From positions 386,107 to 418,106 of the forward strand of contig NW_008806279.1 in the NCBI RefSeq assembly GCF_000400465.1: DNA of 32,000 nucleotides. The letters are read 5' to 3'. Source of the DNA: Wallemia ichthyophaga EXF-994 (lineage: Eukaryota > Fungi > Basidiomycota). The notes under the pieces are model-generated. The model was given only the letters and a program-made list of their open reading frames with translations. It was not told where the DNA came from and searched no databases. Shown in pieces: positions 1,847 through 23,610 of this stretch (the stretch's first letter is position 1; each line of letters begins with the position of its first letter). A program made the translations under genes and the position numbers.

Positions 1847-1879
1847 TTGGTGGAGATGGAAGAAGCTTGAACAAACGCG

Positions 1880-7848: not shown

Positions 7849-7969
7849 GGCTGTTGGTGGTTCAAGTTAGAGAGGGTGTTTGATACATCCCACGCAGAAC
7901 ATAAGCAAATCACATATACAAAGTAGAAATCTCATATATTAACTTAATTTAACTAATTCTCATCTTCTA

Positions 7970-8683
7970 ATGCAACTTCCAACTGATCACGACGCGCAGA
8001 CATCAAGTTATCCCAACCACCCAAATTTCCCCAGTTTCCCTGGAAAAGTGAGCTATTTATTCATCTATGGGATTTTACAAACATTTATTTCAGACTCTTG
8101 TCCATGGCAGAGCAACACATACTGCAAAACAAGCTGCAAAATATAAGCGTGCTTATCTGATAATTAGAGAGAGATGGAATGAAACTCAGCATGAAACTGT
8201 TGAAATTAAGGAAAACATACGTAAAGCTCAATCAGCGTTGCAGGAAGTTGAAGATGAGAATGAGTGGGTTTAGATTTTTATCTCACTTTTTATCTCACTT
8301 TTACAAGTGTTTTACTTGAAGCTTTGCTTAAACATCAGCCTGGTTTGGGTCAGTCTAGCTTGTTTGATGGGGGGCAATTGGAGCAGCAGCAGCAGCAGCA
8401 ACAACAACAATCACCACAGCCACAAACACAATCCCCACAACACCCACAACAACCCATCAAACAAGAAGACCCCCACTATCCCCAGAATCAGGACATTTAT
8501 AACCAACAACAGCAACACGAGCTAGCTTTAATGGGAAGTACAACACATCCACACCAACACATCCACCAAATACAAGATTCTATTCAGATTCAACCAACGT
8601 TATCAACTTCCAAGCGCTCAATCGATGACATTATCTCTTCTAATGATAACGATAACCAATATCTTAAACGTCAGCGTTTCTGA
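7970..8683 (+). CDS. Coiled-coil protein resembling INO80-complex subunit IEC3/INO80E N-terminus, with a Q/P-rich tail; 2 introns
   Basis: Spliced product MQLPTDHD...AAKYKRAYLIIRERWNETQHETVEIKENIRKAQSALQEVEDENDVLLEALL resembles the IEC3-type KY..K...coiled coil..END.LL motif (recognised by eye only). Ends in a basic KRQRF, possibly an NLS. Confidence 0.5.
8380..8450 (+). repeat. CAG/CAA polyQ and QP low-complexity repeat
   Basis: gagcagcagcagcagcagcaacaacaacaa followed by QSPQPQTQSPQHPQQP. Confidence 0.8.
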
Positions 8684-8718: not shown

Positions 8719-11095
8719 TCAACTAGCATAAGCTAATCCAGGTAACAATGCTTTGCCTGAGTCGCTACCTATTTCTGCGAAATCCGCGAATAAATCCATA
8801 TCCACTATACTCTTCATAACTAGGTATATATGTTCCCCTTTATGACTATCACTGGGTTCACACGACGAGCATAGATCGTAACTACCAGCTAGATTTACGC
8901 ATCTAAACCACTTTCCCATTACTGGTTCCATACACCTATCACAAACCACCTTGTCATGTCTGATTGTCGATAGATACTCGTTAGGTCCAGTGTGTGTATC
9001 ACTCCCATCAACTGTTTTACCTGCTGGTAAATGATATAACACCGGTATACTACCTCCCATCCCTCTCAATCCTGGTTCACGTAATTGATAATCCAATTTG
9101 AGGAAAATATGCAATGAATCGTGGAGAACGTACGACATATTCTCGCATTCCGAGCACAGATTATACTCACCAGAGCAGTGCAAACACGCATAACGCTCGC
9201 CTGTAATGTTGGTATTGCAACCATTACACCGCGTGTGATGGTTAGTTGGAGTAAAATTGTGGGTGACCACACCACTTTCCATACCACGCAACTGAGTATT
9301 TTCAGTCTGGATGGTAGGTGTACCGTTCCTATCGCTATTCCACATGCGTCTTGCGCGCGCTGATACCCTGCAGCTGAGTGAGTAATCTGAATATCTACCT
9401 TCTCCTCACCCACTGCTGCACTTCATGTAACGATAACGGCAAGGGTATTTTCATCATCACGTGCGTCTCATCATGACCATTCCCATCTGCCGCTCCGAGA
9501 CTTTCGCAGTTCTGACACAAATCGTACAGTGCACATACTGCGCAGTGAAATCGTGGTCCAATAATATCGCCCAGACAGTGATGACAGAAAACATTCTGGT
9601 GTTTACCTATGAAGTGAGTGAGTGGTGACTGTAAAATAAACAATAGCAGCCTACGATTATGCTGTGGAGTGCTTGTCGCTGCTAGAGATCCATTCGACGC
9701 AGCAGCACCAGCAGCTTGCGAGCGTCTCTCCGTCGCGCTCTCTCTTTCAGCCTGTCTCGTCTGTCTCCCCACCACAGTTTGTGGCAATTCAAGAAAAGCA
9801 TGTGAGGGGTGTATATCTCCCACACTACTCCAACATCTCCTACAAAGGTTAAGGGATTGACAACTGACGCATTTGAAATTAACTTCTAGCTGTGTTTTGC
9901 ATATAGAGCAATCTCTTTCATCACCATAATCTACTTCTATCCAACCCTGATCTGATCTAACACACTCCCTGAAAGCGTGCTTGGGAGTGTTTTCAATTGC
10001 GTGTACTGCACCTGCTCCTTCAATGCAATCCGGACAATATTCACAACTGGATACACCACAAGTTGTGCAGATGTAGCGTAAGTTATCGAGTAATTTTCCA
10101 CAACTGCTGCAAAGAGGAACGTCATTATTGATGAATATTCCATCATTTGATCCAGTAAGCGTATACCTATAAGACCCCTTCCCGTCACGCTCTAGAGCTA
10201 GAGAGACAGACTCAGAATCGAAATTTGATTGATAGTCATCTGACGTAGCTGTAAGAGTATCTGTAGCTGTAGACTCAGATGGTGCTAGCTGTGTGCCAAA
10301 TGTAGCCAAAAGTGCTCTTTCAGATTGATCAGCAAACCAACGCACTGCTAAATCACCTCTATCTGGACCATTATTAGAACCATCTGCGATTACAAGCTTG
10401 TTGGAAAGCTCAGTGGAGGTGTTGAGAGAGGGTGTAGACTCTGACGGTTTTAATGGGTTATGAGTGGCTTGAGATGCTGATTCATAGTCATCATCAACAT
10501 CACCATCTTCGTCGCGCTCATTGTGTACCTCTGGTTGCCGTTGCGTCATAGTGTCTGAGATACTATCAATCTTTGTATTGTGGTTGGATGACGAGGCTAG
10601 TGACTTTGGCTGTTTAGAAGCCATCTTCATTGCCTGCTCTTTGTACTTGACGGATAGTTTCGAGAGTGATGAACGCAGTGAGAATGACTTTTTAGTTGAT
10701 TTCTCAGAAGAGGATTGAGAGAGTGAAATAGAGCAATTATCAGCATCCTTCACGCCGTAGCTAACCGATTCAGAGGAAGAAGAAGAGTTGTATATCGACG
10801 TCGCAGCATCAGAGAGTGAAGGGCCATCGTAATCGACGAGGATTTCCAAGTTGAGAGTGATATTATCATCGCAGTCACCACCAAAATACTCCAAACACTC
10901 ATCTAAATCGTTATCGGTTTGTAGCCTAGTGTGGATCCCATCGTCATCGACGTAGACGACGCTAAAAGAGTCACTGGCTAAGGAGAACGCTTGCTGCAAT
11001 TTCAAGTTCAAGTTATGGATATTCAATGAAAGTCTATTAACATAAGTAATCTTCTTGTATTTCGCATCGAGACTGCACTTTACAATTACAGCCAT
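8719..11095 (-). CDS. PB1 domain plus five ZZ-type zinc fingers (NBR1/p62-like selective-autophagy receptor architecture); probable introns ~9654-9607 and ~9412-9367
   Basis: N-terminal PB1 (VIVKCSL...SVVYVDDDG..TRLQTDNDLDECL). ZZ motifs: CSSC..RYICTTC, CSIC..FKCVSC..NLCRRC, CHHC..IIGPRFHCAVC..YDLCQNCE, CNGC..ITGERYACLHC..YNLCSECE, CDRC..VMGKWFRCVN..YDLCSSCE. No FW or UBA domain recognised. Confidence 0.85.
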
Positions 11096-11098
11096 GGC
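11091..11098. promoter_or_regulatory. Palindromic double start-codon site GCCATGGC
   Basis: The + strand ATG (11094-11096) and the - strand ATG (11095-11093) share 2 bp. Both read gccATGGc. Confidence 0.85.
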
Positions 11099-11786
11099 CG
11101 ATCCATTTCAAGTGCTTGAGTTGCCAAAGACAGCATCACAAGGTGAAATTAGGAAGCAGTATTTAAAGCTAGCCAGGCAGCATCATCCAGATAAAGTACA
11201 TGACTCACAGAAACCCCAAGCAGAGGAGTCATTCAGGCAGATCAGTGTGGCATATGAAACTCTAACGCAACCACCTTCAGAAAGATCCTCTAGCTCACAC
11301 TCACAAGCATACGCTGATCCTTTCTCCATGTTCGATCAGCTATTCGCCCAAATGAGATCATCTTCTGGTTTCTTCAACGATCCTTTCTTTGGCGGTGATA
11401 GTATGGGCGGAGATTCGTTCTTCGCTGATCCTTTCACTGCTCCCTCCCACAGAAGACGCGACCCATTTGCAGATATGATGGGTGGCGGTGGTTTCATGGG
11501 CATGGGCATGGGCGGGATGGGTATGCCATCCATGATGTCACCAGGAGGAATGGGAATGGGTAGATCAGCAGGCAGATCAATCTCAACAACCGTCGTAAAT
11601 GGAAGGAAAGAAACGCGCGAGACTAACACAAACAGTGACGGGTCGTCGACAACGACTATAACTACACCTGAGGGTTCATACCAAACAACACAGCAAGCGC
11701 AGCTTCCACAGCAATCAAGCTCAAGCTCTACCAATTCAAGGCAATTCAACGCCTTGCCAAGCGCGTATAACAGTTATTGGATGTAG
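11094..11786 (+). CDS. Class B J-domain (Hsp40) co-chaperone with G/F/M-rich linker and S/T-rich C-terminal region; intronless
   Basis: MADPFQVLEL..ASQGEIRKQYLKLARQHHPDK..AEESFRQISVAYETL contains the HPD motif. It is followed by FF.DPFF repeats, a GM-rich segment and SISTTVVNGRKETRET. The real ATG is at 11094; the ORF track uses an upstream TTG. Confidence 0.92.
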   Translation: MADPFQVLELPKTASQGEIRKQYLKLARQHHPDKVHDSQKPQAEESFRQISVAYETLTQPPSERSSSSHSQAYADPFSMFDQLFAQMRSSSGFFNDPFFGGDSMGGDSFFADPFTAPSHRRRDPFADMMGGGGFMGMGMGGMGMPSMMSPGGMGMGRSAGRSISTTVVNGRKETRETNTNSDGSSTTTITTPEGSYQTTQQAQLPQQSSSSSTNSRQFNALPSAYNSYWM

Positions 11787-11884
11787 AATAGTGGTTGTTG
11801 ATACTTGTACACTGATTATATAAACATTATTGCTCTATTTATTGGGTGGTTTGTTGCTGTTACTGCTACTATTCACTACAACTA

Positions 11885-12152: not shown

Positions 12153-12216
12153 CCTCGCCGTCGATATTCTAGTGTGTGGCTAGTTGAAACGCGACGGCGA
12201 GGTACACGCGCTATAA

Positions 12217-15900: not shown

Positions 15901-16474
15901 TTGCAACTGAGCAGCGACATCCTCGCCTGGAAGTATCTTGCCAAGATCAAAAGGTATTTTGATAGCAATAGAAAGCCACAAAAGCACAACGTATCTAAAT
16001 TCCCAAGTCACAGTTTGAGTAAAGGATCGTGAAGCGTTGATAACCAAAACCAAGTCTGGTATGGAATGAGGGAAGAACCTGCTAATAACCTTGTAACCTC
16101 TAGTTTTGCAAAATGTGTATATAAGTCTCGACAGCGTATTCTTTGCGCTATCGCTGTGCTGATGAGATAACGATATCGATAGTGCGCTGATAGCGGGAGA
16201 AAGCATCCGATCTAAGTAAGGATCGAGCAGATAGCTTTGTTCCTGGTATATTTCTAGCTGTGTCCACCGTAAGCTCTCGCTCACGGGATGGCAAAACACG
16301 AACAATCAAACCAATTTGATAGACAGCGGAATCTTTGGCGCGTAGATCGACAACGCCTTCATCTAGTACTGTACTTAAATACCTGTTATAGTCCTGGAGA
16401 TGATTGAACGTCGACAGCAGCTCATCTTCATCCATCTCAATTCGATCTCCTCGCTGTTGCACCACAACCGCCAT
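12993..16474 (-). CDS. TBCD: Tubulin-folding cofactor D (TBCD; Cin1/Alp1 orthologue), HEAT-repeat protein; about 7 introns
   Basis: LEIYQEQSYLLDPYL, YTFCKTRGYKVISRFFPH, WEFRYVVLLWLS, LSDSDTIVRWSAAK, WHGTTLALAE, RDAAAYLFWAMAR, FDREVHIRRAASAAFQELVGR, DQRGDVGAWVR. The start could be the ATG at 16474 or at 16435. Confidence 0.93.
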
Positions 16475-16482
16475 CTACTCAA

Positions 16483-20939: not shown

Positions 20940-20970
20940 GGCTGAGTGAGTCAAAGAAGAAGACGAGTTT

Positions 20971-22581: not shown

Positions 22582-23610
22582 ATGTTCAACTTGTTCAAAT
22601 TGTTTTCCAGTGGCCATGGCAGTGGCAGCGTGGCAGAAAAGGATCCAGCTATGGAAGCGTTAAAAGCAGCAGCATCGGCAAATGCAAATGAAAAACAACC
22701 CAGCAGCACGAACATACCCGCACTGCCCATTCAACCACTCAACCTCCCCAGTCTCGCAAAGTTACGTGGGAAGCACGTCGTACTCGCAAGCAGCTCACCG
22801 CGCCGTCGCGACATACTCGCGCAAGTTGGAATACATCCCCACGTCGTCCCGTCCACTTTCGCCGAGACGCTGAGTAAGGAAGACTTTGCACACGATGCAC
22901 ACGCATACCCCATAAACACGGCCACTGAAAAAGGCAAAGAGGTTTATGAAAGAATGGTGGTGAGTTGCTAACGATATGGCCATATGACGCCAGTTAACCT
23001 ATTTGCAGATGGAAGACGATAAGAATTCACCTGATTTAGTTATTTCAGGTGAGTAGTGAGTTTACAGCACCATTCACACACTCACACACTCCCACACACA
23101 GCCGATACAGTCGTTCTCGTCCCAGACAACGCTCCTTCTCTTTCCAAGGGCCAGAGCTGGGATGAGGCGCATGGAGAAATGAGCTACTCTGTCTGTGAGA
23201 AGCCCATCGATAAAGCTGACCAGTATCGCATGCTCGCCGATGCTAGTGGCCGCTCACTGCAGGTAGTCACTGGAGTGTGTATTAGTGGGTAAATGCACTC
23301 GTATGCACACTTTCTCTCACCACCTACAGCTTACCCCACCCTCCAAGCACCCGGTTATGCGCAGAGGACATTCGCCAATGCCACTACCGTTCACTTCTTC
23401 GATATCGATCCATACACCATTGACCGCTACATAGACACAAACGAGGGTATCGATAGAGCAGGTGGTTTCGCGGTGCAGGGATTGGGCGCGTTTATGGTCG
23501 AGGGCATCACCGGCGACTACAACAACGTCGTAGGATTCCCTCTCGCAGAATTTGTTCGTTTCTTAGACACGCTTATCGAGAATGACGAAGACGTGCTCCA
23601 AGTTGAGTAA
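22582..23610 (+). CDS. Maf-family nucleoside-triphosphate pyrophosphatase (ASMTL N-terminal/YhdE-like); 3 introns
   Basis: VVLASSSPRRRDIL, VVPSTFAE, TATEKGKEV, VISADTVV, EKP, YI.T.EG.DRAGGFAVQG.GA, GDYNNVVGFPL. Confidence 0.9.

Follow-up and report, generated by a model that had tools for sequence, protein, structure and literature searches.

Can two divergently transcribed genes of a free-living eukaryote share a single start site so that no intergenic DNA is left between them, and, if so, where do their promoters and 5' leaders lie? This question is raised by a locus of Wallemia ichthyophaga, a halophilic basidiomycete with a compact genome (PMC3849046, PMC6738226) of 9.6 Mb, of which about three quarters are coding (PMC3849046). 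The window analyzed here is a stretch of 32,000 nucleotides (nt) of strain EXF-994 (contig NW_008806279.1, positions 386,107 to 418,106), and all W. ichthyophaga positions refer to it. In an initial annotation, which was made from the letters of the window, a plus-strand gene for a J-domain protein (J-protein) and a minus-strand gene for a protein with a PB1 domain and ZZ fingers (PB1-ZZ) had been proposed to start at overlapping ATGs within a palindrome.

Two start codons on one CATG

The palindrome was found as described: GCCATGGC occupies positions 11091-11098, within the surrounding sequence caattacaGCCATGGCcgatcc. The ATG of the plus strand spans 11094-11096, and the CAT at 11093-11095 is the ATG of the minus strand, the A of which is position 11095. 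A11094 and T11095 are common to both start codons, and the coding sequences on the two strands overlap by 2 nt. The palindrome extends over 8 bp because residue 2 is alanine in both W. ichthyophaga proteins. Only one of the 113 CATG sites in the window gives rise to long open reading frames (ORFs) on both sides (230 and 566 codons); the runner-up has ORFs of 82 and 263 codons, and one of the ATGs there is not the first of its ORF. Another copy of GCCATGGC, at position 22613, is not accompanied by ORFs, and therefore it is the gene arrangement that matters, the octamer itself being unremarkable. As to the frequency of the tetranucleotide, 113 copies of CATG compare with about 177 expected from the dinucleotide content. 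GGCC, CCGG, CTAG, TGCA, and TTAA are likewise under-represented (the ratios for 4-bp palindromes range from 0.57 to 0.94), so that the shortage of CATG is general and unrelated to the shared start.

Upstream of each start codon, an in-frame stop codon is reached without an intervening ATG, after 13 codons for the J gene and after 4 codons for PB1-ZZ. Downstream, the next in-frame methionines are residue 79 of the J-protein and residue 156 of the PB1-ZZ protein, both past the N-terminal domain, which bears out the earlier claim that later starts would cost the proteins their J or PB1 domain. Both starts are indeed needed, as had also been proposed: the J domain begins at residue 3, the predicted first β-strand of PB1 comprises residues 2-9, and the orthologues begin alike. 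The site is located in the interior of the 543-kb scaffold KE007229.1 (GCA_000400465.1), and a 35-mer spanning it is identical among three independent W. ichthyophaga assemblies.

The locus is a genuine head-to-head pair of protein-coding genes, the start codons of which are interlocked on one CATG, with zero intergenic DNA. The two genes, both of which have orthologues, are adjacent on opposite strands with their 5' ends facing each other, and they form a divergent overlap of two coding sequences (CDS/CDS), with nucleotides common to the 5' ends of both. With start codons 0 nt apart, the transcription start sites (TSSs) are almost certainly separated by less than the 1 kb that delimits bidirectional gene pairs, unless a distant 5' exon exists.

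Judged from its sequence, the product of the plus strand is a DNAJB2/B6-like class B J-protein. The J domain with its HPD motif (QHHPDK) is followed by a DPF/G/M-rich middle part and a C-terminal RSISTxVVNGRK block. The features of class B were all found, namely an N-terminal J domain with HPD, a G/F-rich linker, and a C-terminal Ser/Thr-rich SISTxxVNGK/R block, and no Pfam domain other than DnaJ, and hence no zinc-finger domain, was detected. An alignment with fish DNAJB2 covered 92% of the query and passed through the RSISTxxVNG block; its identity is low (26%), and for this reason the protein is termed DNAJB2-like and orthology is not claimed. At the other end of the gene, 98 nt (11787-11884) separate the stop codon from that of the convergent Dad3 gene. 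With such a short distance, the 3' untranslated regions (UTRs) of the J-protein and Dad3 genes probably overlap, too.

The minus-strand ATG opens a 566-codon ORF (9395-11095), which corresponds to exon 1 and a further part of a protein of 760 amino acids (aa). The exons were placed by mapping this protein (P0001) onto the window. The mechanically defined ORF reads through intron 1 because this 48-nt intron is in frame and free of stop codons; if retained, it would add 16 residues between ZZ fingers. Four Pfam ZZ stretches (E 5.5e-19) follow the PB1 domain. The Pfam match to PB1 itself (residues 5-75) is below the threshold in W. ichthyophaga and above it in the Lyophyllum orthologue. In an AlphaFold (AF2) model of the first 100 residues (mean predicted local distance difference test, pLDDT, 79), strand 1 comprises residues 2-9, and the closest PDB matches of the model were the PB1 domains of AtNBR1, human NBR1, p62, and p40phox/p67phox. 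The ORF from 11095 is thus predicted to yield a complete PB1 fold that begins at residue 2. An FW or UBA domain was not found (PB1 and ZZ were the only Pfam families up to E = 1; short motifs were not searched). NBR1 is marked by FW, and a UBA domain together with an Atg8-interacting motif would be the alternative mark of these selective-autophagy receptors; the protein was therefore not filed as NBR1, and its likeness to NBR1/p62 is confined to the N-terminal architecture. The 3' end of PB1-ZZ is adjoined by a plus-strand ORF (8264-8683) that encodes a glutamine-rich stretch with a run of nine glutamines; it lies inside an annotated gene for a 207-aa protein without a Pfam family.

Conservation of the overlap and probable loss of the spacer

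Orthologous loci were collected from NCBI, ENA, and Logan for a close relative (L003, Logan), W. hederae (L006, GenBank), a relative of W. hederae (L009, ENA), and W. mellicola (L002, L007, and L008). The interlocked CATG, with both genes head to head, is present in W. ichthyophaga and in these four other Wallemia lineages, i.e. in all lineages examined; no further lineages emerged when the PB1-ZZ alignment was run against JGI metagenome contigs. Conservation of the CCATGG overlap, which had been put forward as a check, was thus observed for CATG in all five lineages, whereas the flanks vary: on the J strand, the sites of the other lineages read gtCATGgc, gtCATGat, gtCATGgt, and gtCATGag. The conserved part consists of the four bases CATG. 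The 8-bp palindrome and the matching gccATGg contexts, i.e. the identical Kozak contexts of the initial annotation, hold for W. ichthyophaga and are confined to it.

The N-termini are M-[A/T]-V-[I/V]-[V/I]-K-C for the J-protein and M-[A/S/V/M]-D-[P/A]-[F/Y] for the PB1-ZZ protein, and in every lineage each methionine directly abuts the first structural element of its domain. Even the closest pair is saturated at synonymous sites (dS > 1.6). Purifying selection on both genes is strong: their dN/dS amounts to 0.05-0.09 and remains below 0.1 within the first 60 codons of PB1-ZZ. Taken together, these values show that both genes are functional and that the arrangement is old.

In W. hederae (L006, 5000-5006), the site reads CATGATG, and the J-protein has two consecutive in-frame ATGs (MMD...). 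If the second one is used, the start codons are adjacent and no longer overlap, which may represent a first step out of the interlock.

An outgroup was available in the form of a metagenomic contig (L004), which has the same local gene order as Wallemia (EAP30, a short ORF, J, and PB1-ZZ). Its EAP30 protein is 44-50% identical to every Wallemia copy, compared with 64-85% within the genus. Here, the J ATG (3601, minus strand) and the PB1-ZZ ATG (3693) are separated by a 91-nt spacer, the PB1 protein carries about 28 extra N-terminal residues, and its PB1 strand begins at around residue 30. The PB1-ZZ orthologues of Lyophyllum and Rhodotorula are flanked by different genes, and the pairing with J is absent there. 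The pairing is therefore conserved in five Wallemia lineages and one outgroup contig.

Short spacers are a general property of the window. Five further divergent pairs have ATG-to-ATG spacers of 31-121 nt (Table 1), and their orthologues in W. mellicola and W. hederae have spacers of 52-105 nt. The squeezing of promoters and leaders into, or beyond, a few tens of nt is therefore the rule in this region, and the promoters and leaders of the five pairs must either intrude into the neighbouring genes or be extremely short. The J/PB1-ZZ pair is the extreme of this distribution.

The arrangement is thus probably the end-point of compaction, the far tail of a genome-wide loss of spacers, rather than a dedicated regulatory device. 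An ancestral bidirectional pair would have formed in the Wallemiomycete lineage with a spacer of about 90 nt, as in the outgroup contig. Compaction of the Wallemia genome would then have removed the spacer as well as dispensable N-terminal residues of both proteins, and the shrinkage would have halted once the start codons met and each methionine stood directly against an essential domain. The interlocked state would represent a mutational trap: any deletion would hit a domain or one of the start codons, and an insertion inside CATG would in most cases kill an ATG. The difficulty of leaving this state by mutation may explain why it has persisted beyond the saturation of synonymous sites, and we infer that selection for the overlap is not needed for its persistence. 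The locus would also mark where compaction stops, namely with both proteins trimmed to their first structural element.

Promoters, leaders, and competing explanations

In the absence of intergenic DNA, the core promoter of either gene has to be located inside its partner's first exon. This placement had been part of the initial annotation, and it follows from the interlock of the five lineages. The 5' leader of each gene would also be located within the partner's first exon. For the J gene, the leader probably comprises a few tens of nt, with 50-107 nt upstream of the start being free of ATGs (68, 75, 107, and 50 nt in four lineages, which is not significant). The PB1-ZZ leader would either be shorter than 11 nt or carry a tiny, tolerated upstream ORF (uORF). 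If either leader is longer than 0 nt, the geometry dictates that the mature transcripts are complementary at their 5' ends, and the two mRNAs would share a short stretch of this kind. With regard to transcripts, neither protein occurs in the supplements of the 2013 transcriptome paper, and exact-protein look-ups matched genomic contigs only.

The uORF starts with an upstream ATG (uATG) at -11 of PB1-ZZ, which is made by codons 4-5 of the J gene (CCA TTT; xCA T). A script located the uATG at an identical position in all four lineages to which it was applied, inspection by eye added L009, and the uORFs comprise 4-6 codons. In 4 of 5 lineages, the uORF has 4 codons and its TGA overlaps the PB1-ZZ start codon as ATGA. 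The Pro/Ala codon usage of the J gene yields a chance of about 0.04 for this conservation, even when the lineages are treated as independent, and therefore we do not claim the uATG as a selected feature. The uORF could be a translational gate on PB1-ZZ or mere codon usage of the J gene.

In codon alignments of four lineages, no synonymous constraint indicative of an embedded promoter motif was detected in the first 20, 40, or 60 codons of either gene. Unchanged synonymous codons accounted for a fraction of 0.07-0.21 near the start versus 0.12-0.24 in the rest of the genes; the power of this test is low. For 13 divergent pairs of three species, the antisense strand of the neighbour's first 60 coding nt (20 codons) contained 20 ATGs compared with 24 expected (P = 0.24), and this test has little power, too.

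Several candidate elements were rejected. A splice acceptor before the J ATG (acAG|ccATG) exists only in W. ichthyophaga and L003 and is absent from W. hederae and W. mellicola. The TATA-like TTTAAATA, which was noticed by eye about 70 nt upstream of the PB1-ZZ start in the J codons for Q-Y-L-K, is absent from L003. The translation initiator of short 5' UTR (TISU), a metazoan element with the consensus SAASATGGCGGC, spans the ATG of genes with very short leaders. W. ichthyophaga resembles it in having ATGGC on both strands, but the flanks, AGCC before the ATG and GCCGA after it, do not fit the consensus and vary between species, and thus the site is not a TISU. For the same reasons, i.e. an unmatched consensus and flanks that are not conserved, a YY1-like element on the palindrome was discarded.

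The uATG bears directly on how long the leaders are. Both transcripts might begin no more than about 10 nt ahead of the AUG, a situation that occurs in some highly compacted eukaryotes; the promoters would still be located in the partner's exon, but the transcripts would overlap by only a few to about 20 nt, with essentially no antisense interaction. A leader of less than 11 nt would avoid the uATG, which has a good context in every Wallemia lineage, other divergent pairs leave just 31-47 nt for two leaders, and the lack of depletion of antisense ATGs in the 13 pairs is as expected if leaders stop short. However, the conservation of the uATG is compatible with codon usage, the depletion test has the limits given above, and scanning ribosomes of fungi recognize very short leaders poorly, so that we consider leaders of this length rather unlikely. 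It is a still less probable reading that the overlap was selected as a device that links two genes of protein quality control, either making them mutually exclusive (through transcriptional interference or double-stranded RNA) or obligatorily co-activating them from one nucleosome-free region; the small uORF might in addition gate the translation of PB1-ZZ. The arrangement has outlasted synonymous saturation in five lineages, the pairing extends to the outgroup contig, though not to Lyophyllum or Rhodotorula, a functional partnership of a DNAJB2/B6-like chaperone with a p62/NBR1-like PB1-ZZ protein is plausible, and the uORF stop meets the main start as ATGA in 4 of 5 lineages. The initial annotation had considered such mutual exclusion or strict co-activation possible, but no evidence for a dedicated device was found: synonymous sites near the start show no excess of conservation, the palindrome and the Kozak flanks vary between species, unrelated neighbouring pairs are nearly as tight (31-121 nt), and the mutational trap can explain the persistence. 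The regulatory reading is thus unproven and less likely than the end state of compaction. This also holds for a more specific version, to which we assign an equally slight chance, in which one nucleosome-free region at the CATG would fire the crossed promoters, and the short complementary 5' ends and/or the uORF would set the ratio of a DNAJB6-like anti-aggregation chaperone to a p62/NBR1-like PB1-ZZ scaffold. If it were true, damaged proteins would be refolded or disposed of under salt stress in a reciprocally tuned manner.

That one of the two starts is unused, because of an upstream exon, a start at the out-of-frame ATG 11067 with an extra intron, a downstream methionine, or a silent gene, is highly improbable. 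The GeneMark model of the reference genome does begin PB1-ZZ at 11067 and includes the extra intron, the second ATG of the W. hederae J gene directly follows the first one, and in W. ichthyophaga and L003 the J ATG is preceded by an AG at a distance of 2 nt. Nevertheless, the 724-aa product of the reference model lacks the initial strands of PB1, and no PB1 hit is recorded for it, whereas the ORF from 11095 encodes the predicted complete fold from residue 2, and the orthologues share the same methionine. Furthermore, the AG is missing in W. hederae and W. mellicola, the later methionines cut the domains away, and dN/dS is below 0.1 for both genes, including the first 60 codons of PB1-ZZ. An assembly or sequencing artefact at the junction, which the initial annotation had listed as a possible refutation, can practically be dismissed. 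Nothing was found in its favour, and it is contradicted by the identical 35-mer, by the interior position on the scaffold, and by the same junction in assemblies of four other lineages from NCBI, ENA, and Logan.

Several points weigh against compaction as the explanation. The direction of change, a collapse of the spacer as opposed to its subsequent expansion in the outgroup, is polarized by a single contig, L004. The lengths of the leaders, the antisense overlap, and the expression of both genes are inferred. The conserved uATG at -11 would hamper translation of PB1-ZZ from a long leader, and for this gene the picture of a leader of tens of nt may therefore be wrong. The synonymous-site test, with 9-16 codons per bin, could miss a short motif. 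Finally, both partners belong to protein quality control and their pairing has been kept across Wallemiomycetes, which leaves room for selected co-regulation.

Known overlaps, gene annotation, and neighbouring genes

Bidirectional head-to-head pairs are common and conserved and are served by one short promoter region (PMC1487180, PMC2077898, PMC2871058). The Wallemia pair resembles them in its opposite strands, its facing 5' ends, and the conservation of the pairing across related species. However, the transcription of classical pairs diverges from a common intergenic region, up to 1 kb long, whereas the spacer of the Wallemia pair has a length of zero and the transcription starts must cross in coding DNA. 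According to the summary in PMC2387174, which cites Williams et al. 2005, compaction has led to overlapping transcription in microsporidia and nucleomorphs. The likeness consists in a loss of spacers that pushes signals into neighbouring genes, in trimmed proteins, and in a frozen gene order. In nucleomorphs, the overlaps are mostly tail-to-tail, and head-to-head spacers exceed tail-to-tail ones (PMC3514955). In contrast, the Wallemia overlap is head-to-head and exactly at two start codons, and it occurs in a free-living basidiomycete with a 9.6-Mb genome that is neither an intracellular parasite nor the remnant of an endosymbiont.

In metazoa, selection acts against CDS/CDS overlaps, divergent overlaps show little conservation (PMC2330155), and divergent (5'-5') overlaps or cis-natural antisense pairs mostly involve two UTRs (PMC2330155, PMC1449890). 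These pairs share with Wallemia the overlap of 5' ends on opposite strands and the potential for antisense effects and co-expression; they differ in that the Wallemia coding sequences touch each other and in that this state was kept across a genus with saturated dS. Overlaps of start and stop codons in prokaryotes and viruses are same-strand junctions that are linked to translational coupling. In both systems, a minimal overlap is set by signal sequences, and the Wallemia uORF also ends in ATGA in four lineages; the Wallemia overlap, however, is one of two start codons on opposite strands in a nuclear genome transcribed by RNA polymerase II. Such short overlaps, e.g. ATGA, occur in compact prokaryotic and viral genomes (PMC3887535). 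Among overlaps of a known class, this one, head-to-head at the start codons of two genes in a free-living fungus and kept throughout a genus, is thus unusual, but it does not constitute a class of its own. The initial annotation had supposed that the arrangement was undescribed; we found no paper on this arrangement, but the 2-nt overlap is recorded in the GenBank annotation of W. hederae.

W. hederae is also the only species in which both genes are annotated. MAKER placed the PB1-ZZ start correctly in W. mellicola and in two other W. ichthyophaga strains and left out the J gene, and in the reference genome PB1-ZZ was mis-started by a gene finder that forbids overlaps. Genes that are mis-started or dropped in this way bias gene counts and presence/absence calls at such sites in compact genomes. 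As two RNA polymerase II genes without any intergenic DNA, the pair is a clean and natural example, stable in evolution, in a culturable, free-living fungus. It makes testable where core promoters, TSSs, and leaders are located when a spacer is lacking, and how much interference is tolerated by crossed promoters.

Table 1. Features of the J/PB1-ZZ locus, J genes missing from annotations, and other divergent gene pairs of the window.
Feature	Position	Strand	Basis or remark
Shared CATG	11093..11096	both	J-protein + ATG interlocked with PB1-ZZ - ATG (11095-11093)
8-bp palindrome GCCATGGC	11091..11098	both	W. ichthyophaga only
J-protein gene, single exon, 230 aa	11094..11786	+	ORF; Pfam DnaJ; DNAJB2 alignment
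J-domain coding region, residues 3-60	11100..11273	+	Pfam DnaJ, E 1e-17; PDB J domains align from residue 3
PB1-ZZ exon 1 (1441 nt)	9655..11095	-	mapping of 760-aa protein
PB1 coding region, residues 2-87, predicted β1 strand residues 2-9	10835..11092	-	weak Pfam PB1; AF2 model
PB1-ZZ intron 1 (48 nt, GT..AG)	9607..9654	-	in frame, stop-free
PB1-ZZ exon 2	9414..9606	-	mapping of 760-aa protein
PB1-ZZ intron 2 (46 nt, GT..AG)	9368..9413	-	mapping of 760-aa protein
PB1-ZZ exon 3, two further ZZ fingers and stop codon	8719..9367	-	mapping of 760-aa protein
PB1-ZZ uORF, 6 codons, out of frame, crossing the main ATG	11086..11106	-	uATG 11 nt upstream of start (gaaATGg)
Unannotated J gene, W. mellicola	L002 5257-6001		MAKER annotation
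Unannotated J gene, W. ichthyophaga strains	L012/L013 2211-3001		MAKER annotations
PMT/TMP-TENI divergent pair	1847-1879		ATG-to-ATG spacer 33 nt
COX7C/207-aa divergent pair	7849-7969		ATG-to-ATG spacer 121 nt
Dad3/EAP30 divergent pair	12153-12216		ATG-to-ATG spacer 64 nt
TBCD/2OG oxygenase divergent pair	16436-16482		ATG-to-ATG spacer 47 nt
Class-II tRNA synthetase/GWT1 divergent pair	20940-20970		ATG-to-ATG spacer 31 nt

Among the neighbouring pairs, the COX7C model of W. hederae (L006, 1554-1608) overlaps its divergent neighbour by 55 nt. The model comprises 110 aa, compared with 67-78 aa elsewhere, and the overlap is probably due to an over-extended N-terminus and does not represent a second true overlap.

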